64,000 bases of DNA from Styela clava. Its lineage: Eukaryota. A program made the translations under genes and the position numbers. The notes under the pieces were generated by a model that did not search any database, was not told where the DNA came from, and worked only from the letters and a program-made list of their open reading frames with translations. The DNA lies in NCBI RefSeq assembly GCF_964204865.1, contig NC_135262.1:10168001-10232000 (forward strand), written 5' to 3'. Positions 1,146 through 53,889 of this stretch are shown here, piece after piece (position 1 is the first letter of the stretch; each line of letters starts with the position of its first letter).

Positions 1146-4100
1146 ATGTCTTCAGCTAGCTATGACGTTGAACATGCTGGTGGCCCCGGCGATTCAAAGG
1201 TAAGAACATTTCCATTTCTTATATTTAACATACATTCAATAGATCTGTCTTTGACATTCGGAATGGGAGATTTAAATGTGTTCATTCTCATTCTCATTTA
1301 TATATATTGATGTTTTTTTATCATCTTCAACGTAGAGCAAGATGGCATTTAAATTTACCTATAAATCCACTACTCATTCGCACGCAAATTTTCCATCTTC
1401 ATTTACTTAACGAATCCTTCTTATTTTGCAGGATATCTCATGGATCTTTGACAAGGTATGCATTCCTCCGTAAGCGAGATACTGAATTATTTATTCTTCA
1501 TTGATGTGCGTCTTGTCTGTAAGAATAGCCCTTCCACATAGTATAGCGAAACGCAGACTTGAAATCGTTATTTCGAAAATAATTTATGAATAGAATAGAG
1601 ATATTATGGGTTGGCCGTGAATCTGTGCTAGTCTTGATTTGCAACCCAAAATTCCACTTAGGCGTTGCAAAGTTTTGGCAAATGGCCTAATTACAAGAAT
1701 AGCCTGCGTTATATACTAAAATTATTACAAGGAACCAAAATTTATTGTATCGAACTGTTTCAACAAAATATATATAAACACTGTTATCCCCTTTTCTATC
1801 GATAACAGTTTTAAAAAAAATTGTCTATCAACAGCAGAATACAGTAATAATACAGCGCTATTTAACTTGTGAATATGATGATATGAATATGATGATTCGT
1901 GATTCGAAAAATTCCCTGCTTTAAACAATGGCTAATCCACCACAGTTATCGTATTAGTCTTTCTCATATTATTGTCTGGCGATTTTAGTATGCTGGAAGT
2001 GATGGGAGAATTGCTGTGAAACACTTTTTAGAAATTGTTGAAAAATATCGAACTTCATTGTCTGAGGAAACTATAGATAAATTACTTCAGTATACAGACA
2101 AAAACAAGGATGGATATATCACGAAAGAGGAACTCACACAGTTGGTAAGAGACGATGAGTTACCATTCGAAGTATTATGGCACTTCATCTTGAATGAACT
2201 GACGTTATTGTTTGAAATTGTTTATTTATAGTATCGTATGTCATGCATGAAATTTTCTACACATCGATAATGAGCTCACACCTACTCGGAGGATTTGTGA
2301 ATACCCATTATTGGATATTCATAAATAAATACCATTTTGATCACCATTATATATTTTGTATATTGAAAAATCTTAATACAAATTTTATATTTTCTTTACA
2401 AAGTGGGGAGATCATTTTTTTAAGTCCACGCTTCGAAAATATTTCTGGATAATAACTATAGAGCCTGGCACATCTAAATTTCCAGAGATATTATTAGTTT
2501 AGCTTATTTGTAAAATAAATTTGATTGAATTTGTTTTAATAAAGTTTCGCCCTCCTCTGTCGTTTGCCACTTTGAAACAAAGAAAGTATCACAAAAGTAC
2601 AGTACATCGACCTACAGAGAATGGGTGTGACTATTTGTGATGTTACTTGAAAATAAAACCGATACCAATTATGCCTTAGCTGAGCACCGGGTTTATCGAA
2701 AGATGTCTAACTAGTTCAACAGAATACTATGCTGGGGCTCAATATGCGGATAAATAGCTAAACTTTCGGGTAAAATATCAAGCCACGTAGGAAATTTGAA
2801 AAAAATATATTAACAGTAAAAGCTTTCGAGTGACCTTCATCTTGAAGAACTAATTTGTAATAAATCGGCACATTAGTTTTGAATTATTAGCAATTAGCAG
2901 TTTTCCTCACAATAACAAGTTAGCAAAACGACCCACACCTTGTCCATTAATCTAATTTTGAAATACTGTATTCATAATAGCAATCAGAAAACGTTCATTC
3001 CGTGGCTCGAAAAACTGGAGTTGATGTGAAGGAACTAAACACGTTCAATAAAGGAGTGAAAGCAGTTGGAAATTTCGTGTTATTGAATGATGAAGATAAG
3101 GAATTATATTATGAGCATTACAGTTGCTGTCCTCCACCTCTTTTCATGATATTAGTCAGCGTTGCTGAGGTTTGTGATACGAATGGATTCTTACATATTA
3201 GCTTGTTGTATAGGGGGTATAGGGGGTGTTGCGTACCTAGCTATGTATAAAACTTGATTTTATTTTAATAATTATATTTATAGTATGTTTACAAAATAAG
3301 GCTCTAGATATCAATCAAAACATAAGAATTCATTGGCTTTCAAATGAAATCTTTGCCGTTTGTGAACTTAGTGATACGACTTGCCCAATTTATCGTAGCC
3401 TGAGTAAGGCGGTGGGCTTTTTCTTTTTTGCAGTTATAATCAACGTAATTTGTCATTCTAGGTATTAAAAAATTGATTTTGTTACGCATTAATGTTTTCG
3501 TGACCTTTGTCTACTGAACAAGTTGTTCTACGTCAAAATACATCAGGATATCATTTGGCTCAAATCAGAAATCTAGCCTTATTTAGCTAAATAAGAATCT
3601 GAATTATAAAGTATGACCTCAAATTCGGTTTATTTCGAAATAATATCTGCTGCACCAAAATCTCTTTCTTACGATAGTTTGGAGACGTTTTGCACAATAA
3701 GCAATAGTTTTCGACGAGATTCGGTTGAAACCCGGGTGTTTTAAATCAGTACACTAATGCAAAATTAGACTTTATGCTAGATTTCAATTCTATAGTTGGC
3801 TTTAACAAATGTTATATTGCTAGCTATGTTGGTTTATTTACAATGTTTTAGTCAATTTATCCAAGCTAACTGAAACTACATCTCCCGTTTTACTTTTTAG
3901 CGATTCACTTTTTTGTTTTTCGAATCCCAGATCGCAGTTTATATATACTATGGCGTGACTCTCGGGGAATGGTTGACATACCATAGAGATTTATTACAAA
4001 GCCCTCTTGTGTTTGATCCTTCGAAAAGAGAACAAGCTTGGCGTTTCTTTTCTTATATGCTGACACATGCTGGGTAAGAGATTTTCTAATGTTACTTTAC

Positions 4101-5827
4101 ATTGATAACAAATTGCTAATGAATTTTTCAAAATTATAGATGAAAATTTATATATCAGTAAAAACTCATATTTAGTTTCTGAAAAAATAGGCTAACTGGT
4201 TTTGTAGGAGTTGGTTTCAGCTCTCGTGTCAACTAGCATCTCTGTCGCAAGAAAAACTGCCACTAAAATCAGCGATTGTTAATATCAGTTACAACTGTCA
4301 ATATTTCGTAAAATACTTTATTGTATTGTATGCTAATAATTTTTATCTTCAGGTTGGAACATGTCGGTTTTAACGTCTTTGTACAACTGATCTTAGGAGT
4401 ACCTTTGGAGATGGTCCACGGTCCACTGCGAATCTCAGCAGTATACATGGCTGGAGTTATAGCAGGTATTAGAATTTTCCAGCGTTATATCATTTATTTT
4501 AACTTTTTAGACTCGTTTTTTTATGGGATCAGTGGTTAAGAAGGTTAACATATACCTCCATTATCAATCACACACTTCATCACAATTTATTATTCAATAT
4601 CACAATTCATTAATTCCATTATCAAACTTGTTGAACACGAAGTGAACATATGTTAAGATCGTTTTTTATCATGTTGTTGTTCATCTTTTTAGTATTTTTT
4701 CCATTTCCTCATCTTGTGAAAAAAATCTGCTTTTCTCATAAACTATTGAACCAATTGCTTTGAAATTTTTAATGGTTCAAAAATGACTTACTTTTTCTAA
4801 AAGACTTACTTTTATTTGTTTCAAATATTTCTGTGGGCTCTATGGGATTCAGTTTTTGTGAGCGGTGATGTCATCAAAACGAAATGTTATATTTTAATAG
4901 CACAAGGCAAAATTTGACTTTTTGTTTATGCATTGATTATCCTGCAAAAAATAATGATATTCTTTCTATCCTCTTGTTTTCGTGTTTAATATTTTTAGAA
5001 AACGTGCAAGAAGAATAAGAGAAATTTTTGTATTTTTGAACTATTTTTTTAGGTTCTCTCGCGTCGTCCATTTTCGATCCATACACTATACTAGTCGGTG
5101 CTAGTGGAGGAGTGTACGCTATGTTTACAGCCCATCTAGCCAACGTTATTCTTGTGAGTAAAACTCTTGTTGTTGCATTGATTTTCTTCAGTTTTTTGGA
5201 TAAATCAAAAATGTATTATTATTTTTTCAACAGAATGGCGATGTTATGCATAAGGTGTCCAGTCTACTCAGGACATTCTTTGTTCTATTCATACGTAAGT
5301 ATCATCATTATTATTGAATAAACAAGAACAACAATAAAGATACATATGGACATTTCGTGCCCGAAAAAAACACGAAAATTCATTGATAGCGAAGTTCTAA
5401 GGCTTATTTTCACATGCGAAATTAGTAATATAACAATTGTTCATTTTAAGTTTCGGCAACTTATAGATTCTGCAGTTTTACTTTATGATATATTAATTAT
5501 TAATTTCCCACTGAAATTTTCAAATTAGAGAACAGTCAAATAATATCGATATTTACTGTCAATATGAAACTTTTGTTTTCAGTGTGTTTCGATTTCGGAT
5601 ACTCCATTTATCGAAGATTTGACAGTTCCAGTGGCGGCGCTAAAGTTTCTTTTGTTGCACACGTCGCGGGAGCTTTAGCTGGACTAACAATGGGTCTTAT
5701 AGTTTTGAAAAACTTCAGGAAATCACTCACTGATAAAATCGTGTTCTGGGTTGCTGTTGCTGTTTATATCGCTCTTATGGTATTTGCCATATTTTGGAAC
5801 ATATTTTGGCCTGGCTATGATTTATAA
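1146..5827 (+). CDS. Rhomboid-like intramembrane serine protease with N-terminal EF-hands (RHBDL1/2/3 or rhomboid-4 type), ~361 aa, 9 coding exons
   Basis: In-frame exons 1146-1199, 1432-1455, 1989-2144, 2981-3169, 3931-4073, 4353-4465, 5053-5153, 5234-5294, 5583-5827, all GT-AG. Motifs: EF loop [13 protein letters not shown]; [10 protein letters not shown]; [12 protein letters not shown]; HVGFN; catalytic GASGG; catalytic His in AHVAG. Confidence 0.93.
4628..4830 (+). repeat. Dispersed repeat family A, partial copy (non-autonomous Helentron/DINE-like, tentative)
   Basis: Shares GATCGTTT..ATGTTGTTGTTC...GCTTTTCTC...ACCAATTGCTTTGAAATTTT with 39780-40201 and, inverted, with 14343-14635. Confidence 0.65.
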
Positions 5828-8759: not shown

Positions 8760-11700
8760 ATGGCGAATAATAAAATGAAGAATGGAGTCGGGATGTTGTA
8801 CGCTTCGCTTATCATTTTGTTGGCGTGGATAAATAGCAGCGACGCACAAGCAAGTAAGTAAACTAATATATAGAGAAAAAAATTTCGTATTCCGAAATAA
8901 TATTTTGTCTATATTTATTATTCCTATTTTGTGTGTAGACTGTGGCATTCCGTAATTTTTGTAGAAAACATGATATATTTAACTTTGACTAATACAAAAA
9001 ATATGATACTGTACGGTAACGATAATGATGCTACGACTAAAATACATAGGTCAAGATTCAGCGCTATTTGATTGTTCATTGATATTACCAAAAAACTTAT
9101 TTATATGAATATTATATTTTGTGCTTCACAGACTATTGCAATGTTAATGGAGTTACCCACCAAGTTGGAGAAACATGGACTACTGCTACTGGAAATGACA
9201 GATTAAAAAAGTGTACTTGTACGAGAAGGGGACAATGGAACTGCTTTTACGCGAGTAAGTATGACTACATATGGAAGATTCGTTGAAACTATTTATCGAT
9301 ATTTGTACCGTGAATATACCGAATTGCTACTTATAATAGTCGACGTAGTTTATACGAGTACAATTTTACAACGATTTATTGTTTTTTCGACCAAAAAGTT
9401 ATCGATAATGGGTTTTTAAAATGCACTATTACCAGCGATGCTGCCAGTGCTTGCAGTCGCATATTTTATTCTGACGAGCAACGCAGCAGCCAGCAATGTT
9501 GCATATTTTTTCACTATAATTCTTTATTTTTCAGGGGAAGATGCTTTGATGGTAGTTGCAGACGTTACAAACATAGCTAAAGTAAAGCTCAGCAACGCTG
9601 CCGGATTTACTACTTCTTTTATTCGAGTGAGTACCCTTCAGTATCAGAATTTTATTCCTCTTTTATTATTTGCATTGATTTATTGAATGATATGTGTTTT
9701 ATTTAGGATTTACCTGGTCGCACTGTTGCTGTTGATGTTGATATTGAAAGTGACACAATTTACTGGACTGATGTCAGTTATAAAGGACGTGGAATTTATA
9801 AAGCAACATTTTCCAATGGTCATAATCCTAGAAGAATTATAACGGAAGGTAATTATGGATTTATAAAATATATGAATATACGAACGAAGATAACATGCAT
9901 TTTTATAATTATTTCAATTCATTTTCCGTGCAGATGTTTACGAACCCAATGGAATAGCAGTTGATTGGTTGGCTAAAAATGTTTATTGGACTGACGCACA
10001 AATGAGATCTATCTATGTTGCTAAAGAAAATGGACAACATAAAACTCTGGTCGTCGGAGGTTTATCAGAACCAAGAGGAATTGTTGTACTGCCGTTACAC
10101 GGGTAGGTCTAAGTCATAAAATGAAACGTTGTTTATCGTCATTCAAATATACAAGCTGATATTTTGTATTGGAAAACTAACTTTGCCGAATTCTATACTA
10201 ATATCCTTTTTTAGCATCATGTTCTGGTCAGATCAAGAAGACGGTACGATAGAAACTGCCGCTATGGATGGCAGTAATAGGAAAGTAGTCATAGGTGGAC
10301 TGGGATGGCCAAACGAAATTGCGGTGGATGTGACAAGGACGTGAGTTGGGTCCAACACTGTTTGTTGTTTATGTACATCATTCCAAAACAAGCATCATAA
10401 ATATTCTCATTTTGCAGTAAAATATATTGGATAGATGGAAAGAAGCGAACGATAGAATCGTGTAACTTTGACGGAACTTCCTGGAAGAAAATTCTTGACT
10501 TTGCTATTACATTTGACAGTCCTGGATACGGTCTTTCACTCTTTGGAGGAAGATTGTATTTCTCGTAAGTGAAAGAATTTGTGCTGTTGCTCGTTTATTG
10601 GCTCCGAAAATAAGATTTAAGTTTAAGAAATTTATATGTTCAATATTTATTTTATGAAAGATAGCAGTACCAAGATTCAAGAGAAGTGAAATTCTATGTA
10701 AAATTCCGAAACTATTTCTCACGCAAGCAGTCAGAATCGAATCTCCGATCTATCTTATTGTGTGATTTGGAAATACACCAAATTTGTAACAAAACGTATT
10801 CACTATCGGTTAATAATACAATGGACTAAATTACAATCACATTAGTTATCCAATATCCGATACAGTTGTTTAGGTATCTTTATCTATGTTCTTTTTTTTA
10901 TTTTTTTAAAAATCATTTCTAGAATATGGAGAGAAAAAGCTGTCTATTCTGTCACGGTGCTTGGGCAAGATCTGAAGCAAGTTGTTTCAGGTTTAAACGA
11001 AAACCTTGCAGGCATCGCCATTATTAATAGAGATATGCAGCAAGCGCCTATTTGTAAGTAGTTCAAATATAATAGTAAAATTACATCCTGTAAGCTCTGA
11101 ATATATCTTACTACCTATATGGTATGAAATAATTGACATCATAGAATCCTACTTACCGAATAGTGAATCCACACTTTATTTAATTTATGTGACGTCATTA
11201 ACAACGTAATAGATGTTAAGTGACGTAATAATATATTATTTCATCCAATTGAAATTATATTTTTAACGTGAATCAGTGCTTTAAAATATTAACGAGTTAT
11301 TTCACTAAATTAATTAATTTCTTTTTTGATTTATCATCTTCTTATTACAGCAAACAGTATGGGACTTTGTCGAAGACATAGATCTCCATGCAGTCATATT
11401 TGTCTCCCAAAATCACGAGGATCATATAGTTGTGCATGCCCGGAAAAAACTGGAATGGTGTTATCTCAAGACCAACACACTTGTAAAGGTATATATGACA
11501 AAATATATTAAATGATGAACAATAAAATAAAATTTAATGCTGTGCAGACGTAAAATCATATTCTATTTCAAGACCGTAATATCTTCTGATTTGAGATCGC
11601 TATTAGTGAATATTTTTAATTTTATTTCATATAATTATTGAATTTATAAGCCTACTTTTAGTTCCTAACAAGATACTTTTATATTGAATGTTTAGTGCAA

Positions 11701-14700
11701 TTCAACATATAATCAACTATTGGAAATAGTCAGTATGCAACTATATTGCAGAAAACATAAATAAATTTTCAACACGTCGTATTACCCTAATTACAGTGCC
11801 CGAAGAGTTTATTCTATTCACTTCTGTACACGATGGATCCATTATGATTGCTTCAAAAGAATTCGGTACAAAACCGAATCCGGTTTTATTGACTCATGCT
11901 ACACAACCATCCGGAATAGACTACGATCCCATAGACAAGGTACGGATTCGATATATGCCTCAGTATGTGCAAACGCGCAGTCGTTAGTTTGCAAAGATTA
12001 AATTGGCTAAATTGAACCACGCAGATCCACTTTAATTTCAACTATGTGAGATAATTTATGAATTTCAATTACTGGCGATTATCAAAAATCCTGGGATGGC
12101 CCAATTATCGATAGATGTAAGTTGTTATTGTGCGTCGTTTTCTAAAATCTAAATCCAGATGTAACGACCCTTGATAAAGAAATGTAAGTCACCAATCTTG
12201 TTCTGTAACGAAATTTTATCTTACTTGTGACTTGTGAAAATCCGAGATAATAATAATTAACAAGTGAAAGCGACTATTGCTTAGAGAAACTTTGGGGTTT
12301 CCAATCTTTGTATATGCGGTAAAATATACCGAACGTTTTATTCTTTCCTGTCAATGTAACTTGCGAATTCGCAGAAGTTGTTCAAACTGTTAATTGCAGA
12401 TAACAAGTGCAACAAACTATTCCTATCGAATCATAAAAAACATTTAAAAAAAATGCAAACTTCCAAATTTTAGATGATGTATTGGAGCGATGTTGCAACA
12501 AACGCCATTTATCGAATGAGATTAAATGGGACTGGATATGATGTGTTCCTTGAAGACGGAATCGGAATCGTAGACGGTCAGATTCACTATAAATTTTGTA
12601 TAAGTCCTAGTAGGGGAGAGGGCTATTCAAATGGCAATTAGGACTATATAGCCATCCTTACACACTACTCCTAATTTGACCACTGTGCTTCTAATTTGTA
12701 TTGTAACAGTATTGAGTGTGACACATATAAGGAAACAATAGTTTAATAAAATCAAGCACATGTACTCCAAACTTTGTTGGAAATGAAAAACTTTACGTTG
12801 CAGTTTTACGAGGCTTTACCGGTAACTTGAACATTTATTGTCTGTCGTTTGTGTCATCTGGTTTTCTAGAATACCCTTAGGGTATAATGACTTAGTCTTA
12901 TCTTAGCAACATGAAAACTAGTTTGGTAACATGTCTACGAAAATAATTAAGAAGTTAGGTAAGATTTCCCGTGGTGTTATATGAAGCTTAATAAGTTATT
13001 AATTATTAAAATAACCGATTTTATATAATAACTGCTACTATATACTATGTGGACATAGGTTGCTCCCGTATTAAATCAGTATGTTGGCGTTTCAATACAG
13101 ATGGAAGTTGTATACCCAAATACAGAATTGTAGAGAAACACGTAAAAAAACTAAAAATCAAAATCTTTTTATATTATTTAGATAGTTGTGTACTCATTTT
13201 GACTGTGTTGGCATATACTCGACACAACACCGCGATCTAACTGTGAAATAATCGTAACATGTACTATATTTCCAATTAGAAATGGTAACATCTTGATGAG
13301 CTTGTGTTACGCCCGAACAGGCTTGATCTGGGGAAAAAGATAAGCATTGTATATTATAAGCCATCACAATCCATTCCGGATCAAAAATGATGTACGAATT
13401 ACTTGCATTTAGGTATCACACTAAACAACTTTGTTCTTATTATCCATGCTTCCATTATCTTAACAGGTATAGTCGTTGACTGGGTGAATCGACATCTTTA
13501 TTTTACAAATTATGGCTGGGAAGCACAAGATAAACAATTCGGACGAATTGAATTTATTCGGCTTGATGGTACTGGCCGTAAGGTATTAGTCCAACAAGGT
13601 TTAGACAGGCCGAGGGATATTGTTATTGATCAAGAAAGAGGGTGAGTACGATTAATGCGTTCAAGTTCAACTAAAGTGGGTTTGAACCCCATCCAAGCCA
13701 GCTCTCCCGGTGTGTAATAAATAATTTCTGGTTAAAATGGTTTATTAATAAGTTCAAGTTCTTGTGCCATTAGGAAGCAAATATATTATGTAAATATATT
13801 TTACGTAGATGGCTACCAATATTTTTGTTCATATTTATCTTCATTCGCAGATTTTTGTATTACTCTGACTGGGGAGTGGACGCAAAGGTTGTTCGCCTTG
13901 ATTTAGACGGTCGGAATCCCCATCTCGTCCCTGTTGTCGTGGAAAATCCTAACGGACTCGCACTCGATGACGCGATTCTTTTTGTTACCGATTCTCACCG
14001 CAAGAGTGCGCTAGTGGAAGTGAATGGAACTATCATTTATGGAAGACCACCTTCGTTAATCAAATATGATACTGCTTTGGATAAATTAGAAGAGAATATG
14101 GACTTGGAATTTGAGGTATATTTTAATTACGGTTTGATATATTTGATAGGAAAGCCTATAAGATGGATTAATCATAAGACAAACTATGGTCTCTCATGAA
14201 GTAAAAGCGTTCCGTGACAGGGAAGTTGAATCAGCTATATTTACCATCCCACTATCTGATCCAAAAATGATAACAAATATTTCAACTCCCATCAATTTTA
14301 CAAAAAATTAGATTTTTGCTACAGCTTTATACTCTAAAAAAAACAAGAGAGCGATGCTTAAATATACGGACACAAAGGCAAAACGAAGTAAAATCATATA
14401 TATATATGCAATCTTTCACGGTAGACTATCGGTACCGCAGTTTTAACGACTTTTTCTGAGCACGAGATCCGCCGACTAGCCTTCTAGCAACAAACAAAAT
14501 CTATAACCATTTCAAATTTTAAGGCAATTGGTCTAGTAGTTGATGAAAAAATAGATTTTTTCACAAAAAAAGAAAGAAATAAAAACAACAACATGAAAAA
14601 AAACGATCCATATGTACATTTCGTGTCCAATAACAAATTCACGTTATCACATAAAAAATTCAGGGCACGGGTCAAACTCCTTTGGGGTGTTATTTTATTA

Positions 14701-17700
14701 CAGACTAGCTTATCATAAACGTAATAATATTACAGGTTCCCTTTGGACTGTCTATGGATCAAAAAACTTTGTTCGTTACTGATTGGGGAACAGGAGCAGT
14801 GTCCGAAATTGATGTTAATACTGGAATCATGAAACCAATAGCAAAAGGAATTGGTAAACCAACAGGGATCGTAAGGGCGAGCTTAAATCCTAAGAAAAAA
14901 TGTAAGTAAATTTATTGTTCGCTCAGTATAGATCTCTAGCGGTGAATTTTGGAAAATTGGTTCAGTGTTAGGGACTCTGCTTTGTGTTAACTCGCATAAC
15001 ATTTATTGTTCAGATAAGAATGACTGCATGAAAGGTAAAAAGTGTAGTCACGTGTGCGTTCCGGTTGATCAAGATTATTCATCGTGTTTGTGCCCAGATA
15101 ATATTGGAAAAGCGATGTCAGAAAATGATTTCGACTGTGTCGGTATGGAACATACTAGTGTTACAAAACTTCCTATTATTTCTCAGTTTTGTTTTTTCAC
15201 ACTGACGTATCGATATATAAACTTCTTTTTTCAAGCAGTGGTACTCAATTCACTGCCCATTTATATTTCAGCTCCTGATCGTTTCGTCTTAATTGCCGAT
15301 GTGAATAAAATTCTCATGATAAGCGACAGTCCAGATGATCCATCAACTTATATGGTTGTTCGTACATTCGATGATTACAGCAACATAGTCGCAATTGCTT
15401 TCGATCCTATCACACATTATGTGTATTGGGCAGACAATGGACGACAAAGGATCTGTCGTAAAATGTTGGGATCCCCATTAGCTGGCGACGGTGGTACGAC
15501 AAAGGACATAGAAGTGATATATACAGAAATAGGTAAGTGTATTTATCACCGATTTATTCACCGACTCCAACGAGTATTATCAATAATATTAAAAATCAGA
15601 CGATAACAAAATTGATAAGCAGTAAGCACCCCACACCACCGCCGCAATCAATGCAAACAAAAAGCCTCTGATTCACATAAAATTTCGATCTGTATTTTAA
15701 ATGATAATAATGTATGTGGTTCAAACCAGTCTACCCTATTTTTTATATCACGTTTGAGCTTAGACATTGGGCAATAGGTTTGAACCCGATATCTTTAAAC
15801 TGCTATGATTCAATGTAACAAAATTAATTTTCATAGCAAAATAGCTACTTTAAACCCAAATTTCCAACCCAAATATGGATTGTTTTCGCTGAGATTAGAC
15901 GGTTGGAAATCCTATCTTAGCTAAAGTTAAAAAACGTTTTTCAATTACCCTATTTTTTCTGATTTTTAATACAGCATTGCACCTAAAAAAGTAAAACCAC
16001 TTATGACTAGTTTGAACCGGTTGTGGTCCCGAGCGCCATCTAATCAAAACTGCGTTTTATATATATGTACCGATACGTGTTTCAATCATGATTGTTAAAT
16101 CATATTTGCTCACTCATATTCAGAAATGGTTGAAGGAATGGCTTTAGATCCGGACAATCGACTCCTATATTGGACAGATGGGGGACTGGGTACAATAGAA
16201 ATGATGGATCTCAGTGGTATGACACATGCTACAGTACACGAACAATTGAATAATCCGAGGGCGATTACTTTGGACTCTAGCATGGGGTAGGTGAACATTT
16301 AGAATAAAAAAGATATAGCACACTGTACACTGTAGGAAGTACATTGTAAAAACGGTTTTTAGATCTGTCGATCATTTCTATTATGTGTGATTTACTAATT
16401 GTTCTTCCTGGCCCGAGTCATTTCATTTAAATGAATCGAGTCACTTCGATTTTGATAAATGCTGACTTGAGTTGCCGAATCAATGTTTTGAGCACTGCAT
16501 GCTTCTTCAAGCTAATGTTCGTTAGAAACGCGAAAAAGGTGGAGGTCAAAATGAAACAAGAGCCCATTTTAGATCTACCGTTTTGCAATTTAATGTCAAC
16601 TCCGATGTTTGTTTCAGGGTAATATACTGGACAGAATGGGGCAGAGCTGCAATGTTGATGTCGTCGCGGATGAATGGTTACGATCCCCGCCCTCTAATTA
16701 CGACTGATTTGAAATGGCCAAACGGACTTTATTATGACGTAGACGAAGACAAAATTTATGTTGCTGATGGCGCAAAATTGAAATTACAATCAATTTCTGC
16801 TATTTCTAGATCTTACAATAATTTCGGTAGGAAACATATTATTGCAACATTGATTGTATGCTGTAGTTTTGAAAAAGTTATTTAAAAAACCTGAATTTTA
16901 TAAAACAAGGACAATATTCTGAAATTAATTTGAAATATAAATCTATTCTCATTTTTATTTAGAGATTACTTTCCATTAAAATTGTACACAAACTAATCTC
17001 TATCCTTCTCTCTCTATCACTCAATAGGTGTCGACATACTTGACTTTATTGATCTCAATGGAACCGTGGAGCATTTATTCGGACTAGGGAAAATGGGAGC
17101 TCACTTGCTGTTTACGGATTGGGAAACGGGAACGTTGTATAAAAGAGGATTGCTGGAATCTTCTGTTCTCGTTACAAACCTTACTAGGCCGACACAGATT
17201 TATACTCATTTTTCAGCATATAGACCGGAAAGTAAGAATAACACAACATTTCTTTTTTACTTATAAAGTGTTTCTGGATATACTGGCGTTATTACGTTAA
17301 AGTTTTAAATGGAATGGATATAATTTTGTTTTAGTTAAAAGTCAATGCAGTACAGCCATCCACGATTGCAGTCATATATGTGTACCAAGTGCTGGAAGTT
17401 ACAGATGCTTATGTCCGGACCATCTCGTATTGGCAAACAACTTGAAAAACTGCGTAAGACGTGAGTGTAATATTAAGGAATTGGCCACGCTCCAGTGAAC
17501 ACTTTTTGCAGAATATTCTGCAATTCAAAAATCTATATAAAGTACACGCATGTCAGATCTTTGATGCATTCACTTGTGTTTTTTTTTTTATATTTTCCAA
17601 TTTTACTCAATTCAGCTGAAAATTTGCATCTTTACACGACGACGCTTGAACCACCCGTTACTATTGATGAAGACTTAACAACCATGGCATGGGGAGATGA

Positions 17701-20700
17701 GTTTACAGAAGCAATGGAATTCGAGGAAGAAAGAACTTTGCGAGTAAGTCTAGAGCTGGATACTGGTACGGTTTAGAAGACGAATCGCTCGTTCGTTTAT
17801 AGAAAAACTTAATGCCAGAATAACCTAATCGAAAGGGTTTCAAACGACGCTTTGGAATAAACGTTTTACCTTAATGTCCGATATGGCATGTTCAACTTTA
17901 ATGTTAATTTTAATGGGTTTGATCATTTTATGTTTACGTCTTGTAAATACCCCAATACAAGAAATACTTTGGGATATTTTTTACTATGCTTTAGATTTTT
18001 TCACTCCGAACAATTCTATTTGAAAGAACTGGAATGTTTCCGAATCGTCATTGTTAACCAAATTTATTATATTCTGATGATGTTGTGGGCATATGGGATT
18101 TGAAATCGAAAACAATTTTTATACAATTCAGATTGTATTAAAAATATTAAATTTCACTTTTCAGTTGGAGAGATTACCGGAAGTTACAACTGTTGCTAAC
18201 ACAACAGCGATAATGACAACAACAATATACATGGAAACTGCGACAACACCAGAACCTACCACCGCTACACAGGCCACGACAACAAGTACAAACATAATCA
18301 AAGTTAATTTAGATAAAATGAAACTTAATGCTCAATAATTAGGTTTAATGATAATTTTGTGTTAGTTATATGTTACGGTATCAACAGCATATTGATGCCT
18401 TTATCGACGATGGGATGTCGATGAACTGCTTGTTTGTCAACCTTTGTTTAAAATATAATCTTTATGGAACTGTCGGTGACAAACTGCGCTGTACAAATTC
18501 ATTTCTGTACGATATATTATTGAAAAATATTTTCCTATTTTAGCACTACCTCCTCTGCCGCGTTTCCCACTATGTATGGAGCTCCTGAGCAACGAAACTG
18601 CACTTTTCACTATTTCTATACCTGAAGATGAAGGCTTCATTGAAATAAATGCAAATCTTCTGAGTCTTCGTGCCTTGAATATTGCTGATAAAGATTTGAA
18701 TGTTACATTAGTGAATACACAATACTCAAAAGTATACCCAGGAGTTCATAATATACAATTCAAAGCTACGGACAGATATAACAGAAGTATATACTGTAAC
18801 ACTACGGTTACAGTCAAAGGTAATTGTACAAATTTTAATATTCGCAATTAGATATATTTTACCAAAATTGGAATGTTTATAATTGTAATAAATACTTCGA
18901 ACCCCCAATATGATAAAGTGTAAAGCTACAGATAAAATAAACCTCGTTTTATAAATTCAGATGTAACGCCGCCAAAAATACTCTACTGCCCCAGCGACTT
19001 GGATGTCGAAGCGTATGACGATGGAAAAACAACTTTTGTTACTTGGATGGAACCAAAGTTTGAAGACAACACCGGAGTAACACCAATCGTTGTAAACACC
19101 CACAAACCAGGACAATTTATGGACGGCATTCATACAGTCGAATATACGGCTTACGATACTGCAGGGAATTCAATCGTCTGCTCTTTCATGGTAGCTGTAA
19201 TGCACAGAAGTGAGTGTTTAATAATTACGTTTGATTACGATATGATGCCGTCGAACCGTAAAATGGAAATATTTTTATTATATGACGTAATTTAATGACT
19301 TCATATTCTTGCATTGCAATACTTAAATATCAATTCAATGAATTCAAATGATTAAAAATCTTAATTAGCTATTTCAAAATTATTATGTTTGCGACATCAC
19401 TTCTTATTAGGTATTTATTACGTCATAATTTCTATTGTTCAGGTGCCCGCTGCGGTAGTCCATGGGTACCTCCAAACAGTTACCTCACATGCCATTCTGA
19501 TATGGTTACCGGTGATCAAGTTTGCCAAATAACATGCCAAGATGGATACAGTTTATCTCTGAAAACTCCGATAATAAAATGTCGTCATGATCTGGATAAA
19601 TATTCGATCGACTGGCTGCCATTTTTGGATGACAACGTTTGTAAATGTGAGAATATATTATAGCTATTTATAAGAATGTATTGTACGGAAAAAACTGCAT
19701 TCCTGCCTGGCATAGTGCTGCACTTTAATACATGACCTTTAGCCTATCTTAGCTCAAGATGCAATCAAACAGAACTGACACAATCATAAAAATATAGTTT
19801 CGGTTAAGATTACTCTGCCAATCAGATTAAAATACTGATGCAATTGTTGTACTGTTTCGAAAAAACAAATGACCCGCACAATCGTTAAAGTACATTATAC
19901 GAATCTTGCACCAATTTCCAAAAAATATTGAATTTCGTTATTTAATAAAATCTTACATTTGTAATAAGCACAAGTGTAGTGAACATTCATCATTGTACAA
20001 TTTGCGACCATGGTTTCGGTTTATTTCGTGTCGAATCGTCGGGGAATTAACTTGGAGTTTATGATTTTTAAGTATGTCTTAATTAACTTTCATATTTCAC
20101 TTGTCAGTGCCTGCAATTGGTAACCCTCAACAAGTTATTACACTTCAATATCCATGTCCATGTCGACCAACGTCTACATTCTATGAATATACTTATCAAA
20201 TTATGGCTCGGAGACTGAGAGACGCTGTTAGTTGTATGACAAGACAATATTCTCTCGGTCTATGTATCAACGCTGAGAAAAAGATGTTTTTGGAATGCGT
20301 GAATGCTTCTACAGTAGAACTTGTTATAAAGGTGAGAGAAACTTAAAAAAAGATTGTCTGTGAAGATTTAATGACAGGTATGCATTTAATGATGTTGGTG
20401 AATATGTGACAAACACTGCTTTGAGTGGATCTACCTTGCCGTTTACTGCTGGAGACGTCGGTGAAGGCCCCATTAAAATTGAAACTATATATTAATTTTT
20501 GTTCAATTTCACATACTCAATTTTGGGGTCATATTATGATTCCACAACAAACTGAATTACTTTCTCTATAATAATTATAGACACCAAATTTAAAAATACC
20601 TAATTCTCGGTTTCTCCCAAAAATCTTGTAAATTGTAAATTGAATTTCTTACTCGTTAACGAAAGCATAATGAACTTAAATAGACAATGTTAATAAAAAA

Positions 20701-23700
20701 TAAGTGTAAATAGTAAATTTCAAGCAGAAATATGCTTAATAAAATGCTTACTTCAAATGTCTATGATAAAACAGGTCGACTTGGCAAAACTGGACGAGGT
20801 TTCCACTATATCAGAAGCAAGAAGAATCGTAAAACGTTCCGTTACTGAGATTTTAGACAAAGCCGTTGGAGGAGAATTCCAAGCAAGAGGTTCAGACATG
20901 AAGGATTATTCGGCTAGTGAAGAAGCGAAATTGAGCGACATGAATGTTTTATGTAAAAAAGGTTTTAAAGGAGTTAAAGATGGTTGTGGTAAGAATAAAA
21001 ATTTTCTTCTTTCTCAGAATTCTAAAAAATTACCACTGCTATAATACAAAATTATTCATATGAAATCAAATATGGCGATGACGTCTTAGGTTACTGACGT
21101 CATATGCTTATGAAATATGACTTGTATTTTTACAGTCCAATGTCCGCGGGGAACTTACTGGCACGAGGGCGACTGTGAGTTTTGTCCTTTGCATACATTC
21201 CAAGAAAAAACAGGAACACCGCAATGTATTGAATGCGCTGATGGAACTGGAACAAGAAACATTGGATCTACTCATAGATCGCATTGTAAGTTAAAAAAAA
21301 ACATAGTACAGAAATTTGTCTATGAAACAGCGTAAGACTTGATTACAGAAAATATGGTTTTCTACATCTTTTTTCGGACCGAGGTCATTGATAAAAATAT
21401 ATGAAGCTGCAATTATTTGATCGTAGTTGAATGTGATAAGTAAGGATGCCAAGTATGAGTACTTACAAGTATTCGATTCTTATCCAATTCCTAAATTTTC
21501 GATTCCGATTCTCGATTCCGAATCTCGATTCCTCGACATATCTTACCGAAAACACATACTCACCTAAGCAATACCATATGAAATCAAACAAGAGCACGAT
21601 GTTCAAATTCTGGACTGCCAAGAAGGCCGAAACTAAGTGGTATGGGTATCCAATCTGTCACAGGAGACAAAATCGCACAAAAAAACGAATCCCTCAGAAC
21701 CCACAGAGATATTTAAAATAAATAAACGTTAAAGCCTTCTATCGAAATATTATATATTATATATAGTGAAGTTTGCGTTGTCGTAGCAACTCAACATAGC
21801 AGTGAAGCAGTTTATACATATATGTGAAGAAATTGCCACAAAACTTTACACGTTCTTTTCAATCCAAGTTTTAACCTCGAGAATCGATTCCAATGCATCG
21901 GAATCGATTCTAGTCGATTCCGCAAAGAATCGATTCTGTAATCGAATCCGGACTCGATTCCGCCATCCCTAGTGATAAGTAGTGATTTACTATTTTTGAA
22001 ACGATAACATATTACCTACCCAATTTATCACACTCTGGGTAAGGTTTTGGCAAGGGCTTAATCCCGAGATTTCTATTTTGTGACTCAGCCATAGTTAATA
22101 ATACTTTTAAACGCTAACTCCAAAGTTATGCTTAAAACGCATTTTGCACAAGATTCCACAATTATATTTCTTGTTTTTTACAACAGGTGTGAAAATGGTC
22201 AGACAAGAAGAGATCGGCCAACCGAGCGTAATTTTAATCGTCTCTTTAGCTGTGGGTGGCGTTGTTTTAATCGCAGTTATTTTCTCTATTCTTGCTGCTT
22301 GCTGGTTTAAACGAAAACGAAGAAAGCAGATTGAAAAAGAAGCAGCAGAGGCTGCCAGAAAAAAGAGAAGGGTGTGCGCCATAGACAAAATATGTTAAAA
22401 TATAAAGTAGTTATATGCAGCTTTCTAAATCTTCATCCACGATTTCTACTTGTCTAAAGTCTTTTTAAAGTCGATACATCTCATAAAATAATATTTTTTT
22501 TTATTTTGCTAAACTTGTGTTTTTTCAGTTATATTTCGACAATATGTGTTACTTTTATATACCGATTCATTTAAAGCAAATTATCTACCACCCTTTGTAT
22601 TTCAATCGCTGCATTAAATTTAATATGAAATATATAGCCTTAGACTACGTTTTCATTATGAAAAATATTTCATTGCAGGCGCGTCGTCGGCGAAGTAGTG
22701 CTAGCAGCAACCAAGCCTCGATTGGAGTCGTTCCTGTTCAGGGTGCACCACCCGAACAGGGACAAGAAATTCGGACTATAAGTCGAGAATTAGATAACGA
22801 ATTCGAATCTGGGGATATGAGTAACAGTAGAACGACCTCCAGAAGAAGTGGAACTTCGTCTGGGAAACGAGTCACAATTAAAGAAGAGACAATAGAGCAT
22901 AGTATACCACATAGAGAAGAAACAATTCCGCATAAAGGTTCGTGTTTGATTACGCTGTTAGGGCTACTGTTATGAGAATCTCAGATTTTATGGAAGGAGG
23001 CTATAGTTTTTTAGTTCTTAGTTAGCTTTGATATATGTTATCTTATACCTATAAACTCATCCTTGCCATGGAAAGCAATATACGTAAAACTTAACGAAAG
23101 ATTTAAACCATAGTTTAGTTGTTGAATGCTTGATAAAATTTTAAAAAAGTAATATACAAAATTTAATTCAATTTAATACCAATTTTGATTTGTCAGAATC
23201 TTTCTGTGAAATACTATGATATCTGACCCAAACTTGACGACGCTTTAAAACATTCATACAGTGTGACTAAAAACAACATTGTTAATTACTATTACCAAAA
23301 TGAAAAAAAATTATTTAGCGTTCGATGTTATGTAGTTTTTTGTGTGATGAACCAAAAGTTTCAGCAATCTGAGACGTTTTGCACAAAAGTTATGTTCTCT
23401 CTACAATATGTTCTAAAGCTAAACGAATTTTTGGTCTGTCATCCTGTAAATAAATGCATATCTAAACAACATCTTATACATATAAGTTCTCCTTTTTTTT
23501 ATCAGCTGACCCCAAACCGATCGAACCGAGTTGGCGTATGGCTCTTGTAATGAGAAACACAGCAGGAATGAAAAAGAACATCAATAAAATGAAAAAACCT
23601 CCAAAATCAGTATCTTCGGTCACAACTGATGACACAAGAAGTGAAACAAGCGCAAATGATTCAGCGACAGAAGGAACAACGGAAGCGGAAGAAGAAAGAT

Positions 23701-25552
23701 CTCAAGTATGATTTATTTGATCGTTATGACTTCAATTACCCAGGTTTTATGATTGATCCCATTCCAACCCCATATTCCACCGTTCGTTCATTTTCTACAC
23801 TTTTCAAAAAAGATTATCACGAAATTCTCATTTTAAGCAAAATCTATTTCCATAGATGTCGGCTACACAAAGTGAAGCGGAAACCGATAAGACACTGACC
23901 GACGGACAAACAACAGACGGAGAGACTACAATCAGAACAGACACCGAGACATCTGTAGGTGCTTCCGAGTCCGATGCATCGACAATACGAAAAAGCAGAC
24001 GTTTGATGTCAAGTACAAGTGATTTAGGTGACGAAACAATGAGTATGACGTCAGGAAATTCCTCACGTGCGACGACGCCTATAAAAGGAGTTTTAAAAAA
24101 ACCGAAACGGCTTGTTTCAATGGACGACTCAGTCGCTTTTACGGCTGATTCAACGTTCTCAAACACACTGGAAAATGTAAGATATGCCTCTGTACACTCT
24201 CGCTATCACCCTCACTCTTTCGTCCTACCTAATTGCTTTTATATTTATAATTCACAGGCACGAATGTCAGGAGATACTCGAGGGAGAAACAATTTGCGTC
24301 GAAGTCAAAGGCAAAGCGGTCGGAGAAGCGTTTCTCCACAGCAAGGTACAGAATACCGTTTTTTATTCTTCAATTAGGATAAGATAGGATTTACATATTT
24401 ATCCCTGGGAGAGGAAAGTCGATTATACGGCTTAACCATATGGCAATCCACGGCCTCTCGTCCGGTTACCATTCCATGTAGGGTATGGGATTAGTTGGGT
24501 ATTCGTTTTCGGAAGCATGGACTTGATCACAAAATAGAGGATAAAAATATTGTTTTATTTTACAGCTGGAAACAAACAACCTCTCGGTATGCGTCGCTCA
24601 GTTAGTGTCGATAGGGGCCCAATTGGTGTCGGTGCACACAAAATGTTCGACCGTGACAGAGATCCAAGATTCCATACGATGGGACACCGACCTGGAGCTC
24701 CAATGCCACCAAGACCTGGTGGGCCAATGCCCGGACAGCAACCTATATTTCCGCCAGGAGTTCGACCAAGATTTATGGGAGGTCCTAGATTGATGACCAG
24801 ACCTCCTCCAGGAGCAGTTATATATCAGCATCCCAACCATCCAAACATGAGAATGGCGTTTGTGCCTATGAATCCAGGTAAATTGAATGAGTATAATTTA
24901 TTAAAAATTAGAACGAGTACGTTTATATTAATTCGAAAAAAAAAATGCTTTCAATTTTACCAGGTGCAAGACCAAGAATGCAGCCTGGTCGAATGCCTAT
25001 GCCGCCACCCTATGGTTACGATAGCACATCAGAATGGGATTCTATGTCTCAAGGTAAGAACTGATAATACGTTTGTGACGTATCAATGGGGTTCTATAAA
25101 TATGGTTCGAATCTACGACATTTCATCTGTCTTATAGAATGGTGGTTTCATTTGTATGACTGTTGCACCGTAAAACAGAACCGTTATGTGTTATGTTAAA
25201 TCTTTATCAACCCGATTAAATTTTTATCTAAACTTGCCTATTGTTATTCATCAATTTACTTCATTTTCCTATTTCACAGGTGGTAGTGATATTGACATGA
25301 GAAAACCTCCACGACACCGGATGCCCCCACCGGGTATGATGCCCGGATACCCAAGACCTGTTTACGGAAGGTAAGTTTGCGTGATGAAACGAAAACGCCA
25401 TAAAAATGCATCATTATAATGCCACGCCTTAACGTAATCTTACATATTTCAGGATGAGAATGCCGGTTGGAGAAATGATGCCACCCCCTCAGTATGGGGC
25501 TGGATACGCAGGGCCAAGACAGCCAAGATACCCTCCTGGACCCGGGTATTGA
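8760..25552 (+). CDS. Large type I membrane receptor: SP-FN1-3x(YWTD beta-propeller+EGF)-Thr-rich stalk-HYR-HYR-Sushi-linker-GCC2/GCC3-TM-long cytoplasmic tail; ~2100 aa, 37 exons
   Basis: A continuous frame runs through GT-AG exons: 8760-8853 (signal peptide), 9132-9254 (FN1), 9535-11053 (propeller 1, YWTD), 11351-11488 (EGF), 11797-14901 (propeller 2), 15014-15142 (EGF), 15272-17231 (propeller 3), 17335-17460 (EGF), 17616-18285 (stalk), 18544-19209 (HYR x2, DVTPPKILYCP), 19443-19646 (Sushi), 20108-20988 (linker), 21135-21285 (CPRGTY..C..CP..TFQ), 22188-22371 (TM then KRKRRK), and 22679-25552 (tail; TGA at 25550-25552). Confidence 0.88.
14343..14635 (-). repeat. Dispersed repeat family A copy (intronic)
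   Basis: Reverse complement matches 4628-4830 and 39780-40201, including the terminal GTGTCC.TATATTT...GCTCTCTTGTTT. Confidence 0.65.
21441..21971. mobile_element. Non-autonomous hAT (Ac-type) element, 531 bp, intronic
   Basis: Ends TAAGGATG / CATCCCTA. Perfect 8-bp TSD GTGATAAG (21433-21440 and 21972-21979) fits nTnnnnAn. Multiple subterminal GAATCGATTC/CGATTC repeats. Confidence 0.85.
24385..24525 (-). repeat. SINE-like family B, 3' fragment
   Basis: GGATAAGAT...CATATTTATCC motif shared with 56365-56530 and 31810-31890. Confidence 0.5.
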
Positions 25553-28457: not shown

Positions 28458-31400
28458 ATGTTTTTAAAAGAAATAGCATTTCTTCCTGTAGACGTAATAG
28501 CCTTCTTATTAACTTTAGCGGATTAGCTTAAGTATGCTGCAGTCAAAAATTAGCTCCGGATTAAATCGCCACACTCGTTACTTCACTGAAAGTATGTCAA
28601 CATATATTGGCCTTCGGTTGGCATCTGTGATTGCACCGTCGCGTATAAGTGACTGGTTTCTGAATGCTTTGTTGAAAGAAGGTGTAAAATATCTAGTGCG
28701 AATGAAATTTAAACACATGAAGTTAACATAGAGCATTTTTCCACAGATTGTCGTGGCTGTTCTGTCTTGCATTACATTCACATTCGGATCACGGAGAAAT
28801 CAGTCACCAGCATCATGTACGACAACGGGTGTTGAAACCGACTGCAGAGAGAAGCACTTGATGGAAGTACCAGCAAGTATGATTGAATAGTTTTCTGCAT
28901 TGTAAGAGTCCGTTTAGAATATTTTGAGGAATGAATGTGTCTAGTTTGTGAGAAAAAGCCAAAATCAGCCAAGTATTTGAATAGTAAAAGGAAGAAAAGA
29001 AAATTATTCAGAACAATTTACTTTAAAAACTTGACGAATATCCTATTTTAATCAAAGAATTATGAAAAGTGCCAATAATGGAAGCATCTAAATCAAACTG
29101 GAGTCCTTGAACAAGTTACGAAGTTAATAGTTAGCAATCGCAAGTTTGTTTCAGAGCAATCCATCCTCGGATCTGTTCCTATGTCAAATTAAATTTAAAC
29201 CAACATTTTTTATTCATTTTTCAGCAATTTCACATTCTACCCAGAAATTGTACATGGATGGAAACCCGTTGAAAATTTTGAAATCAAACAGTTTCAATCT
29301 ACTTCCAAGTTTACTTAATTTATCACTGATAAATTGCCATCTGTCGACGCTGGATCCCAAAAGTTTCGTGTGAGTTATTTTGTTTTGGAATAATGATAAT
29401 AAAATGCAAAACGAAGCGAACTCGGAATCCCTTCACGTACCAAAAAATTAGATAGTTCTTCATTCCATGTATAGACATAAAAATTAAACAATCAACTATC
29501 CTAAATTCATCCGGACATTTGTTAGAAAACGTAAGTTATAGTAAAATAACGACAGACGGACGAGCATATATGGTTGCAATGAAAAGTTTTATCCAGTCAT
29601 TTTCCAAGCTTAATGAGCATTTTTTCAAAATGAAACAGGATCTATTCCCATGTCCATATTTTTATTTCCAGCTACAAAATTTGATTGATTGAGTGTGCAG
29701 AAAATCTTCTAATAGGATGCATCTTTGTTATATTTACAACACTTATCTGTTTTGATGATAATAATAATATATATGTATAATAAAATTCATTATTGTTCGA
29801 TTATTTAACAGAGGATTGACGAATCTTACTATTTTAAATCTGAGCAACAACAGCATTAAATCATTCCCGGATTTACTATTTGGAGCAGATTTAAAAAATT
29901 TGCAATACCTCTACCTCAAATTCAATTCCATTTCACGAATTTCACAGAATGCATTAGATCATCTGGTAAAGTTAAAAGTAAGTCTTGTTTTGCCAATCTC
30001 TCAATATTTTCGAAATAACGAAAAAATATTCAACAAAGAGTACAATTTTGAAACATTCTTGTAATGCCTGAAAAGGTAAAAATAAATTACAACTATGTAA
30101 AGATAAAATGTGGTTTCAAACGAAACAAAACAAAGTAAAAAGTAACAATTTTGAAATTGTTACATCGCAGTACAAAAACTGACAGACTGACACAAACTGA
30201 GCTAATTCCAGTGACAAATAGACAAACTGGGGCACGTCACCCTCCCTGATAAGCAAGTGGTAGATAGAATATTTGATTTGTTCTGTGGTAAAAAAAAATT
30301 GCAGTGAAAATTGCAAAATTAAATAATTTTTATGTAATATCAAAGATATTCGCTATGAACAAAGTTGCAATCGAAGTTTGAAAAAATGCCTGGTGATTTA
30401 ACGAGATTTTTTGTACCATACAAAAGATTAATTAATGAAGAAGAGTTCTAGATTTGAAAATGTGTGCTCAATGTACTGCCACAAATCTACTAGTATACAT
30501 GACGATAAAGAAGTAATTTTATTAGTGTATATGAGGTTGGAAAATAAACACATTATTGTTTTTTCAGGAACTTCATCTAGAACACAATAAACTCACTGCA
30601 ATTCACCAGCATTCTTTCACCAAGTTGGCACATATAAAATGGTTATCTATCGATGTAAGTTTAGTGCCTTGTTCTTGCTTTATCTTATTAACCTAACAAC
30701 ATTTGAAGTATTAAATTTTAATAACAAGACAAAATACAAAAACGAGCCCATGAATCTCTTGGACTATATATATGTTTAACAAAAATACTATTCATGAGAA
30801 ATTGATTTTTCAAAATGTTCCGCTAATAATAATACTATGATTTTCATTCAAAAGACAAAATAGGATAAAATCATTTGGGTTTTCAACTTTCTGATAATCG
30901 GGCTTCGCTGTATTCACGAATATCAATTATCGCTATATCCAGCGTTTGAAACAAAAGTTTTCTGCGCGGTTGTAAGATTGCCTAATGTAGCAACGATTAC
31001 GAGTCTAGTTATTTGATTTCAAATGATTTTTCACTGATTGCACAACTTCATTCCTTTAGCATAATAGTCTGGTCACTGCATACGCATCGTGGTTCACTCC
31101 AATCACAAAAACACTCACACATTTATCACTCGGACACAATCCTTGGGTATGTGACTCAAAAATGTGCGGATACAAAAACTGGACATCTGCAGCACACAAG
31201 AAGTTTAGTGGAGCGGTTGACATAACTTGCAGGTAAAAATGGTTACATTATTGTTGTATATAGACTAGTGACCGCATTTGATTGAAAATAAATTTTTAAG
31301 TGATGCTAAAATTATATTTAAAATATTCACGAAATTCCAATATCCAATTAAATAAAGGCTCTCAACTAGTCATGCCTATGCGTCTTATATCATAAAAAAA

Positions 31401-50202: not shown

Positions 50203-51421
50203 TTTTAATCCTTGCCTGTAGCAATTATCCGACAGTTGTACAATAATTATCACGACTAGCCAGTTAAAAAGTAACATGTACATTCAAGAATTGATCCTAT
50301 ACGTTCACCAAATCTTACCATTTCGCGTTCGTAGATTGCCCCAATATGGATCTATGAATTGTTGTGCTAATTTGTTGTTGAATGAACATAAATTACACAC
50401 AAATGTCATAATATGCTCAGCAAGCTATCGACAAGAGTTAATACATTGTATGCATCTGTGCCTTGCTCTCTTGTTTACCCAAACAGCTTTTGGCTAAGAA
50501 CTATACTTTATTGCGAACTGCGAAATCAATTTGTATATCATCAACCTAAACTTAGCATCGTGCAGTCGTTTTCTGGAGTAGGCCTACCCGAAATAAAAGC
50601 ATTTATCACATTTTCACGTAACGTACCACACTATGCCGTCTCACTATATATCGGGCCTGAATCTCTCGCATTCAACGTAAATCATTATGTAACCATTGGT
50701 CAGTCATTCAAATATTGACACGACGAACATACTCAAATCATTGTGTATAATTCGATAAATATTTCAAGATGTGCATTTTTATATATCAGCCTAAAATACA
50801 CGTATTTGATAACGATTTTACAGACTTTACCGTCGACTCTGCAGATGTGTCTTTTCCGAGATTATTTTACGCTAAATATTACAACGGGACCTGTCCTGCT
50901 AGCTAGAGCTTTCGCCCATGTCCCATCGAACAACTCCAAAACTGTTTAGTCTGTCAACAAAATAAAGCTCCTACTATACTGAAGCTACCCTCTGTATAGC
51001 TGCTTTCTGGGCTCTGGTCATGAAGTTGTTGATATCTTGTGTCAACTAACATAAGCGCCATACATGGCGCATGAATCGCATCAGAATAATACAGAATCAA
51101 ATCGACTAAAATGTGTACGCCCCGAAGCTATACTTTAGCTGTCCGTACTCATTTGATTACGAAATTCTTATTATTATGTTATTGATCTTTTTAGGTCACT
51201 ATGACTGCACGTTATCTGATTACTGTATTAAAGTAAATAAGTACTGTTAAAACGCTTCCGTCATTAACTATTTAAATAGCATTCCACCGTAACTTTAATG
51301 CTGTTAAATAGTGTCAGTCGCTGAATGTTTAAATAACATTTTAGCGTAACTTCAATACAATAAAGCGCCAGTCATCAAACGTTTAAAGAGCATTTGTCCG
51401 TAACTTCCATACTGGTCTGTA

Positions 51422-53538: not shown

Positions 53539-53889
53539 GATGGTCGAGTGAAACGATCAAAATTGCCTTCGACGGTGTAATCTTGTGCAGACATTTGGTA
53601 AACAGTTTGGGAGAATTGTATAAATAGTAAATACCTGGCCATGAATGCGGCAATGGTCCTTTCGTCCACGGTATTTCATCGATTTATTATAATTTTATTT
53701 GTCGTTTAGTAGGTCACTAATTCAATACTTGGTGCCTGGGAATTAGGACAGGAAGAATTTTTACAAGATTGTAAAAATGGCTTTGTACACAACTGGTATT
53801 CATTGGGTTAGTTATGTGATAATCAGCCAAGAATTTTTGACTAAGCTTTTAATAAATTACCGTACATAACGCTAGCGGAGGAAGACCAT

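Follow-up and report, generated by a model that had tools for sequence, protein, structure and literature searches.

A transcribed, single-copy gene of Styela clava predicted to encode a type I membrane protein that joins LRP-type propellers to an SVEP1-type HYR block

The gene described here lies on the forward strand of a 64-kb stretch of the 377-Mb Styela clava assembly (contig C17:10168001-10232000), an AT-rich region (33-36% guanine plus cytosine) that is referred to as a whole as the window; positions given without a contig name are numbered from its first letter. Located at 8760-25552, the gene is a single-copy, transcribed unit whose predicted product is a type I membrane glycoprotein of 2105 amino acids. 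From the N-terminus, this protein comprises a signal peptide, an FN1-like module, three consecutive units each consisting of a YWTD propeller and an EGF module, a Thr/Glu-rich stalk, two HYR modules, a probable Sushi module, approximately 145 residues without an assigned family, an Ephrin_rec_like (GCC2/GCC3) module, a transmembrane helix, and a disordered tail of 510 residues. We hold the architecture described here with high confidence.

The exon model was built from stop-free segments of the + strand, for which frame-compatible GT/AG pairs were enumerated. It contains 37 exons in one continuous frame of 2105 codons with 0 internal stops, corresponding to a coding sequence of 6318 nt. All introns are bounded by GT..AG, and those across the gene region are short, ranging from 77 to 901 nt. 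A preliminary description of this DNA, prepared from the letters alone, had proposed a single open frame of 37 exons with the domain order given above. Our reconstruction returned the same exon count and order, with the FN1 and Sushi modules scoring below their Pfam cut-offs and the first HYR module (HYR1) giving no Pfam match. Exon 1 (8760-8853) supplies the start codon and the signal peptide (residues 1-31), and is recognized by an ATG that follows an in-frame stop, a hydrophobic core, and a strong donor site. Donor enumeration left the end of exon 13 ambiguous between 14115 and 14019; the former was chosen because the shorter form puts two blade elements directly next to each other. A further segment that looks coding, at 20364-20492, was considered as a candidate exon and was ruled out, as RNA joins 20331 straight to 20775.

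A data look-up for the locus identified eight runs that are probably RNA, drawn from three studies, and four DNA runs from one further study. RNA runs X1, X5, and X6 and DNA run X9 were compared as assembled contigs, rather than as reads, over positions 17001-23000. Within the RNA contigs, GT..AG joints were found at 17231/17335, 17460/17616, 17743/18165, 18285/18544, 18819/18961, 19209/19443, 19646/20108, 20331/20775, 20988/21136, 21285/22187, and 22371/22679, and loose contig ends additionally agree with joints at 16826/17028 (exon 18) and 22937/23506 (exon 31). Each joint is supported by one to three RNA runs and by none of the contigs of DNA run X9, which shows a single unspliced contig over 17001-20375. 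Unspliced RNA contigs were also observed through introns 22 (18266-18573) and 29 (22343-22707), at depths of 4 and 8 compared with approximately 100 for the spliced forms; these probably represent pre-mRNA and not alternative isoforms.

Every junction leading from the third EGF module (EGF3) through the stalk to HYR1 is seen spliced in the RNA contigs. The joints 17460/17616, 17743/18165, and 18285/18544 each occur in two to three independent studies with the reading frame kept, the stalk-to-HYR1 junction carries 30-59 letters on its shorter side across three RNA runs, and one 223-nt contig from run X6 extends across both junctions of stalk exon 22. The preliminary description had set this EGF3-stalk-HYR interval (17460-18544) beforehand as the place at which transcripts of two separate genes could overturn the fusion. 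Spliced RNA from three studies crosses it, linking the propeller half to the HYR half in frame; the two-gene objection therefore fails. The gene is real and transcribed, and it is a single unit rather than two genes. One could still suppose that a secreted propeller gene and an HYR/Sushi membrane gene were wrongly joined in the model, or that the RNA derives from a read-through transcript, given that contigs alone cannot prove one full-length mRNA, that none spans the whole 6 kb, and that in run X1 the overlap of contigs 1 and 3 at 18544 is just ~30 nt. Such an artefact is nevertheless at odds with the three in-frame joints and the bridging contig, and there is neither a stop or start signal between the two halves nor a signal peptide ahead of HYR1. 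We consider it very improbable.

Domains were assigned by scanning Pfam exon by exon, with gathering cut-offs of 27 bits for fn1, 21.7 for HYR, 20.7 for Sushi, and 23.1 for Ephrin_rec_like. Exon 2 (9132-9254) follows the signal peptide. Its eight best matches in the PDB, at E 2.8e-4 to 0.019, all fall on FN1 modules of fibronectin, its four Cys (residues 34, 59, 61, and 69) show the FN1 spacing C-x~25-C-x-C-x~8-C, and it is accepted here as FN1-like. The exon is not among the matches of a whole-genome fn1 scan at E <= 0.01. Above its cut-off, fn1 occurs at one locus only in the genome (C4:6274990).

The three propellers measure 269-283 residues each, and all three have exons with Ldl_recept_b matches, of up to 52 bits. 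A six-Cys EGF module of the LDLR 'FXa_inhibition' type follows each propeller. Propeller 1 (residues 73-342) is encoded by exons 3-8 (9535-11053), with predicted splice sites and the strongest of these Ldl_recept_b matches, and is followed by the first EGF module in exon 9 (11351-11488), which matches FXa_inhibition at 32.5 bits and also EGF. Propeller 2 (residues 388-672; Ldl_recept_b) occupies exons 10-14 (11797-14901), and the EGF module behind it, in exon 15 (15014-15142), is recognized by a weak FXa_inhibition match of 17 bits and by its six-Cys pattern. In a PDB search, the solved relatives of exon 13, which belongs to propeller 2, are LRP4 and LRP2, with LRP4 as the best match (E 2.3e-18). 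Propeller 3 (residues 715-994) extends over exons 16-19 (15272-17231), gives Ldl_recept_b scores of 36-37 bits, has the RNA joints 16826/17028 and 17231/17335, and has LRP6 as its best PDB relative (E 1.5e-6). EGF3, in exon 20 (17335-17460), scores 38 bits for FXa_inhibition and is flanked by RNA joints on both sides.

The acidic stalk encoded by exons 21-22 (17616-18285), whose RNA joints come from up to three studies, consists of 84 residues, of which 30% are Thr and 15% Glu; judged by this composition, it is a stalk of the O-glycosylation type. Exon 23 (18544-18819) is read as the divergent HYR1. It gave no Pfam match in the exon scan; phmmer relates it to HYR-rich proteins at E 2.9e-9, BLASTP alignments repeatedly place it on the C-terminal signature of HYR, and its two Cys stand at the places expected for HYR. 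Exon 24 (18961-19209), encoding the second HYR module (HYR2), matches Pfam HYR (PF02494) at 58.4 bits and is the strongest HYR match genome-wide. Exon 25 (19443-19646), with six Cys, is a probable Sushi/CCP module: it sits after HYR2, the same position as in SVEP1, and its sole PDB match, a weak one (E 0.21), is to the factor XIII B chain, a protein made entirely of Sushi modules. Exons 26-27 (20108-20988) encode residues 1362-1508, with seven Cys, and are spliced to each other and to both neighbouring exons in the RNA contigs; exon 26 gave no usable match in the ESM Atlas, and an AlphaFold2 model of this exon alone reached a predicted local distance difference test (pLDDT) score of 43, which is unusable. 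The Ephrin_rec_like/GCC2_GCC3 module (PF07699) of exon 28 (21136-21285) scores 40 bits, above its cut-off, and has PDB matches at thyroglobulin residues ~1445-1510 (E 0.002), a region that we take to consist of type-2 (GCC2/GCC3-class) repeats. A single hydrophobic helix follows in exon 29 (22187-22371), with its hydropathy peak at residues ~1570-1595, and leads into a polybasic juxtamembrane stretch; RNA joints are present on both sides of this exon.

The disordered cytoplasmic tail continues through exons 30-37 (22679-25552) to a TGA stop codon, with RNA for the first of these exons and for the 22937/23506 joint. Including its juxtamembrane part, it comprises 510 residues, is rich in R, P, S, G, T, and M, and contains few hydrophobic residues. 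It can be divided into three parts: the polybasic juxtamembrane segment with an RRRRSS site, a middle part rich in Ser/Thr and acidic residues, and a last part of 150 residues rich in Pro, Met, Gly, and Arg. All nine Tyr of the tail fall within the last ~110 residues, and the last 150 residues hold two PPxY motifs (residues 2026 and 2084) and three PPG-hydrophobic motifs. WW domains found in NEDD4-type ligases recognize PPxY, and GYF domains recognize PPG-hydrophobic motifs. The preliminary description had spoken of a large signalling tail. Its length and its lack of LRP motifs are borne out, but no Pfam family and no enzymatic or known signalling domain was found in it, and it is better described as a disordered, candidate adaptor-binding tail with PPxY motifs.

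Several observations weigh against the reading developed so far. Two of the modules fall under their gathering cut-offs, exon 2 with 21.2 bits for fn1 (PF00039, E 3e-4) and exon 25 with 16 bits for Sushi (PF00084), and no Pfam family was matched by residues 1362-1508. Exons 1-17 and 31-37 lie outside the RNA coverage and were placed by splice-site logic and domain integrity alone, and the small tail exons 33-34 are tentative within the model. PPxY and PPG motifs easily arise by chance in Pro-rich sequence. Furthermore, both the architecture and the tail motifs are described here from this one genome.

The intron phases bear on how such a protein could have been assembled. The FN1 module, the three EGF modules, both HYR modules, the Sushi module, and the GCC2 module are each encoded by one exon that is in phase 1 at both ends, and every propeller block likewise enters and leaves in phase 1. 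Two intron positions are common to the three propellers, one in phase 1 immediately ahead of the blade-2 strand and one in phase 2 immediately ahead of the (F/Y)W(S/T)(D/E) motif in the blade that follows. Phase 1-1 modules are the classic pattern, as expected for assembly by exon shuffling, and the single-exon modules together with the phase-1 ends of the propeller blocks support the exon-shuffling origin that had been proposed for the gene.

Within its own genome, the gene stands by itself. In the 377-Mb assembly, searches with HYR1, with exon 26, and with the first exon of propeller 3 each found the query alone, HYR2 gave one additional, very weak match, and exon-level searches of the genome detected no close paralogue. 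HYR modules are rare in this genome, occurring at three loci. One locus, an SVEP1-like gene at C14:6055472-6071752, shows the order EGF, GCC2, three Sushi, HYR, HYR, Sushi, and three GCC2, and is thus colinear with the HYR-HYR-Sushi...GCC2 block described here, which supports the earlier designation of that block as SVEP1-type. The identity between the two is low (28-46% over short stretches) and the two genes differ in how their HYR exons are split, which makes any transfer an old one.

The preliminary description had also reported that LDLa repeats, PPPSP motifs, and a tail NPxY were absent, and this was upheld. The 2105-residue model contains neither NPxY nor PPPSP, Ldl_recept_a matched in none of the exon scans, and a motif scan of all + frames over 6000-27000 detected no LDLa-like motif, NPxY, or PPPSP. 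The signal peptide leads directly into the FN1 module and propeller 1, with no LDLa motif upstream as far as 6000. The upstream neighbour (1989-5824, + strand), a gene of the rhomboid family that also contains an EF-hand (EF-hand_7, 31.6 bits; Rhomboid, 28.2 bits), ends near 5824, and the downstream neighbour (29131-33087, + strand) encodes a leucine-rich-repeat protein (LRR_8, 51 bits) whose final exon contributes a membrane-spanning helix and a short, basic tail. Flanked by the rhomboid gene (~5824) and the leucine-rich-repeat gene (~29131), the locus therefore has no room for hidden LDLa exons.

Candidates for the canonical receptors, identified by motif order, are found elsewhere in the genome. 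An LRP4-like locus at C19:11879083-11901396 contains six LDLa motifs, 16 YWTD motifs (four propellers' worth), and an NPxY, and an LRP5/6-like locus at C16:20762753-20799078 contains YWTD motifs, then LDLa, then three PPPSP/PPPTP motifs. The propeller exons of the gene described here are 35-48% identical to both of these genes, without a one-to-one mapping. Given the separate LRP4-like and LRP5/6-like genes and the lack of such a mapping, the gene is therefore an additional receptor and, as far as its predicted sequence and motif content tell, not a diverged orthologue of LRP4 or of LRP5/6. These results bear directly on the possibility that the protein is a divergent Wnt or agrin co-receptor, in which the propellers would bind Wnt/Dkk/Sost/agrin-like ligands, as had been suggested earlier, and signalling would pass through the new tail. 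The tandem propeller-EGF units are indeed of the LRP4/5/6 class, and the best PDB matches, to LRP4 and LRP6, point the same way. However, the units number three rather than four, the LDLa, PPPSP, and NPxY signatures are missing, the canonical genes are present separately, and the propeller exons are equidistant from both with no colinear mapping. We found no indication for the proposed ligands, and such a co-receptor appears quite unlikely.

Our preferred explanation is that the mosaic protein would act as a cell-surface adhesion or ligand-capture receptor. In this model, which is drawn from the predicted sequence, the propellers would bind at least one extracellular protein as a ligand, and the stalk and the SVEP1-like block would hold the propellers away from the membrane. 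The PPxY and PPG-hydrophobic motifs of the tail might recruit WW-domain (NEDD4-type), GYF, or SH3 adaptors, which in turn could control the internalisation and turnover of the receptor; signalling in the LRP6 manner would not be expected. We put forward this mechanism, an adhesion or ligand-capture receptor with an adaptor-recruiting tail, tentatively, and it may well be replaced. Architecture and function taken together, the explanation is the best available and is held with slightly more belief than doubt.

A different assignment would make the protein mainly a matrix or shed adhesion molecule, comparable to SVEP1 or nidogen, whose ectodomain is cleaved near the membrane and whose tail serves trafficking only. 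In favour of such a product, FN1, HYR, Sushi, GCC2, and propeller-EGF units are modules typical of the matrix, the module order of the HYR block matches that of the SVEP1-like gene, and the region without a family match lies ahead of GCC2. Yet the exon scans detected no cleavage motif or SEA domain, a tail of 510 residues is long for a trafficking signal alone, and no secreted splice form is present among the RNA contigs over 17001-23000. We regard a matrix or shed protein as unlikely and retain the cell-surface receptor as the working model.

Exon-level searches revealed no relatives in other proteins. Among the 150 matches listed for the HYR2 exon, all are giant multi-HYR (hyalin-like) proteins, none has a similar propeller, and the product of the gene itself does not appear. 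The longest stop-free piece, of 224 residues, gave no match in a word search whose length window leaves full-length relatives out. Literature searches found no description of the propeller and HYR combination.

Beyond the main subject, the genome contains at least 107 six-frame kringle matches, several of them in dense tandem clusters (e.g., C5:23.82 Mb, C9:2.15-2.34 Mb, and C16:4.10-4.16 Mb), which suggests a large kringle expansion; none of the matches (0/107) lies near any listed YWTD locus. Within the window, intron 28 of the gene carries an interspersed repeat of ~530 bp (21441-21971) with a 10-bp direct repeat, GTGATAAGTA, on its flanks (21433 and 21972). The depth of DNA contigs over this repeat is in the thousands compared with ~6 in the flanks, many contigs run into unrelated sequence at the ends of the repeat, and the repeat looks like a high-copy element resembling a short interspersed nuclear element (SINE) or a miniature inverted-repeat transposable element (MITE). 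Further downstream, a hAT-type transposase remnant (35172-37069, + strand) is located in a GC-richer island, with a 505-residue open frame containing DUF4371 (64.8 bits) followed by the hAT C-terminal dimerisation region (34.8 bits) in another frame. The remaining features comprise a Sel1-repeat exon at 43313-43777 (- strand); two tandem Sulfotransfer_4 genes at 48013-53556 (- strand), whose N-terminal exons are located at 49984-50283 and 53254-53556 and whose C-terminal exons are located at 48013-48462 and 51425-51721; and an amino-acid permease (SLC7-like) gene at 54360-63704 (+ strand), with AA_permease_2 at 43.5 bits over 55291-55536. A scan of the window against Rfam matched no family.

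The significance of the gene depends on how widely it is shared. It might represent a new class of propeller receptor confined to one animal lineage, possibly the tunicates, in which LRP-type propellers were freed from LDLa repeats and wired via an SVEP1-derived block to a WW/GYF-adaptor tail; we find this rather doubtful. Were it true, the FN1 exon would show that FN1 was shuffled freely as a phase 1-1 module beyond the fibronectin and tPA families during early chordate evolution. Conservation within a lineage would make the gene a natural case of LRP-type propellers working without LDLa and without the tail logic of LRP5/6 or LRP4; it would be useful for studying the role of propeller-EGF arrays on their own and would provide a data point on the mobility of FN1 and SVEP1-type HYR modules. 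If it proves confined to one species, the gene would be another of many unusual invertebrate mosaic surface proteins, and its value would lie mainly in annotation.

Among characterized systems, LRP5, LRP6, and arrow are type I membrane proteins with tandem YWTD propeller and EGF units, and LRP6 is the closest solved relative of propeller 3. LRP5/6 have four such units, three LDLa repeats before the transmembrane helix, and PPPSP motifs in a tail of ~200 residues, whereas the gene described here has three units (~270-285 residues each plus a six-Cys EGF module), no LDLa or PPPSP, an FN1 cap, a mucin stalk, an HYR/Sushi/GCC2 block, and a tail of 510 residues. LRP4/MEGF7 likewise shares the class B propeller-EGF units, being the top PDB match of exon 13, and differs in its N-terminal LDLa cluster, four propellers, and NPxY tail, none of which is present here. 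Pro-EGF, nidogen, and other YWTD-EGF proteins carry propeller-EGF units without LDLa in membrane or matrix proteins; to our knowledge, no protein of the pro-EGF/nidogen type contains FN1, HYR, Sushi, or GCC2, or places a mucin stalk after three units in a row.

The second half of the ectodomain finds its counterpart in SVEP1/polydom, where HYR-HYR-Sushi is followed by GCC2/GCC3 (Ephrin_rec_like), an order reproduced by exons 23-25 and 28, with exon 25 as the probable Sushi module. Human SVEP1 is a secreted protein with VWA, pentraxin, many EGF, and approximately 30 Sushi modules; exon scans of the gene revealed no VWA, pentraxin, or long Sushi/EGF arrays, and a transmembrane helix is present instead. 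Conversely, SVEP1 lacks the propellers, the transmembrane helix, and the tail. Drosophila uninflatable (uif) is, like the predicted protein, a large type I membrane protein with HYR, Sushi/CCP, GCC2/GCC3, and EGF modules. It differs in having neither YWTD propellers nor FN1 and in carrying many more EGF modules together with lectin/discoidin modules.

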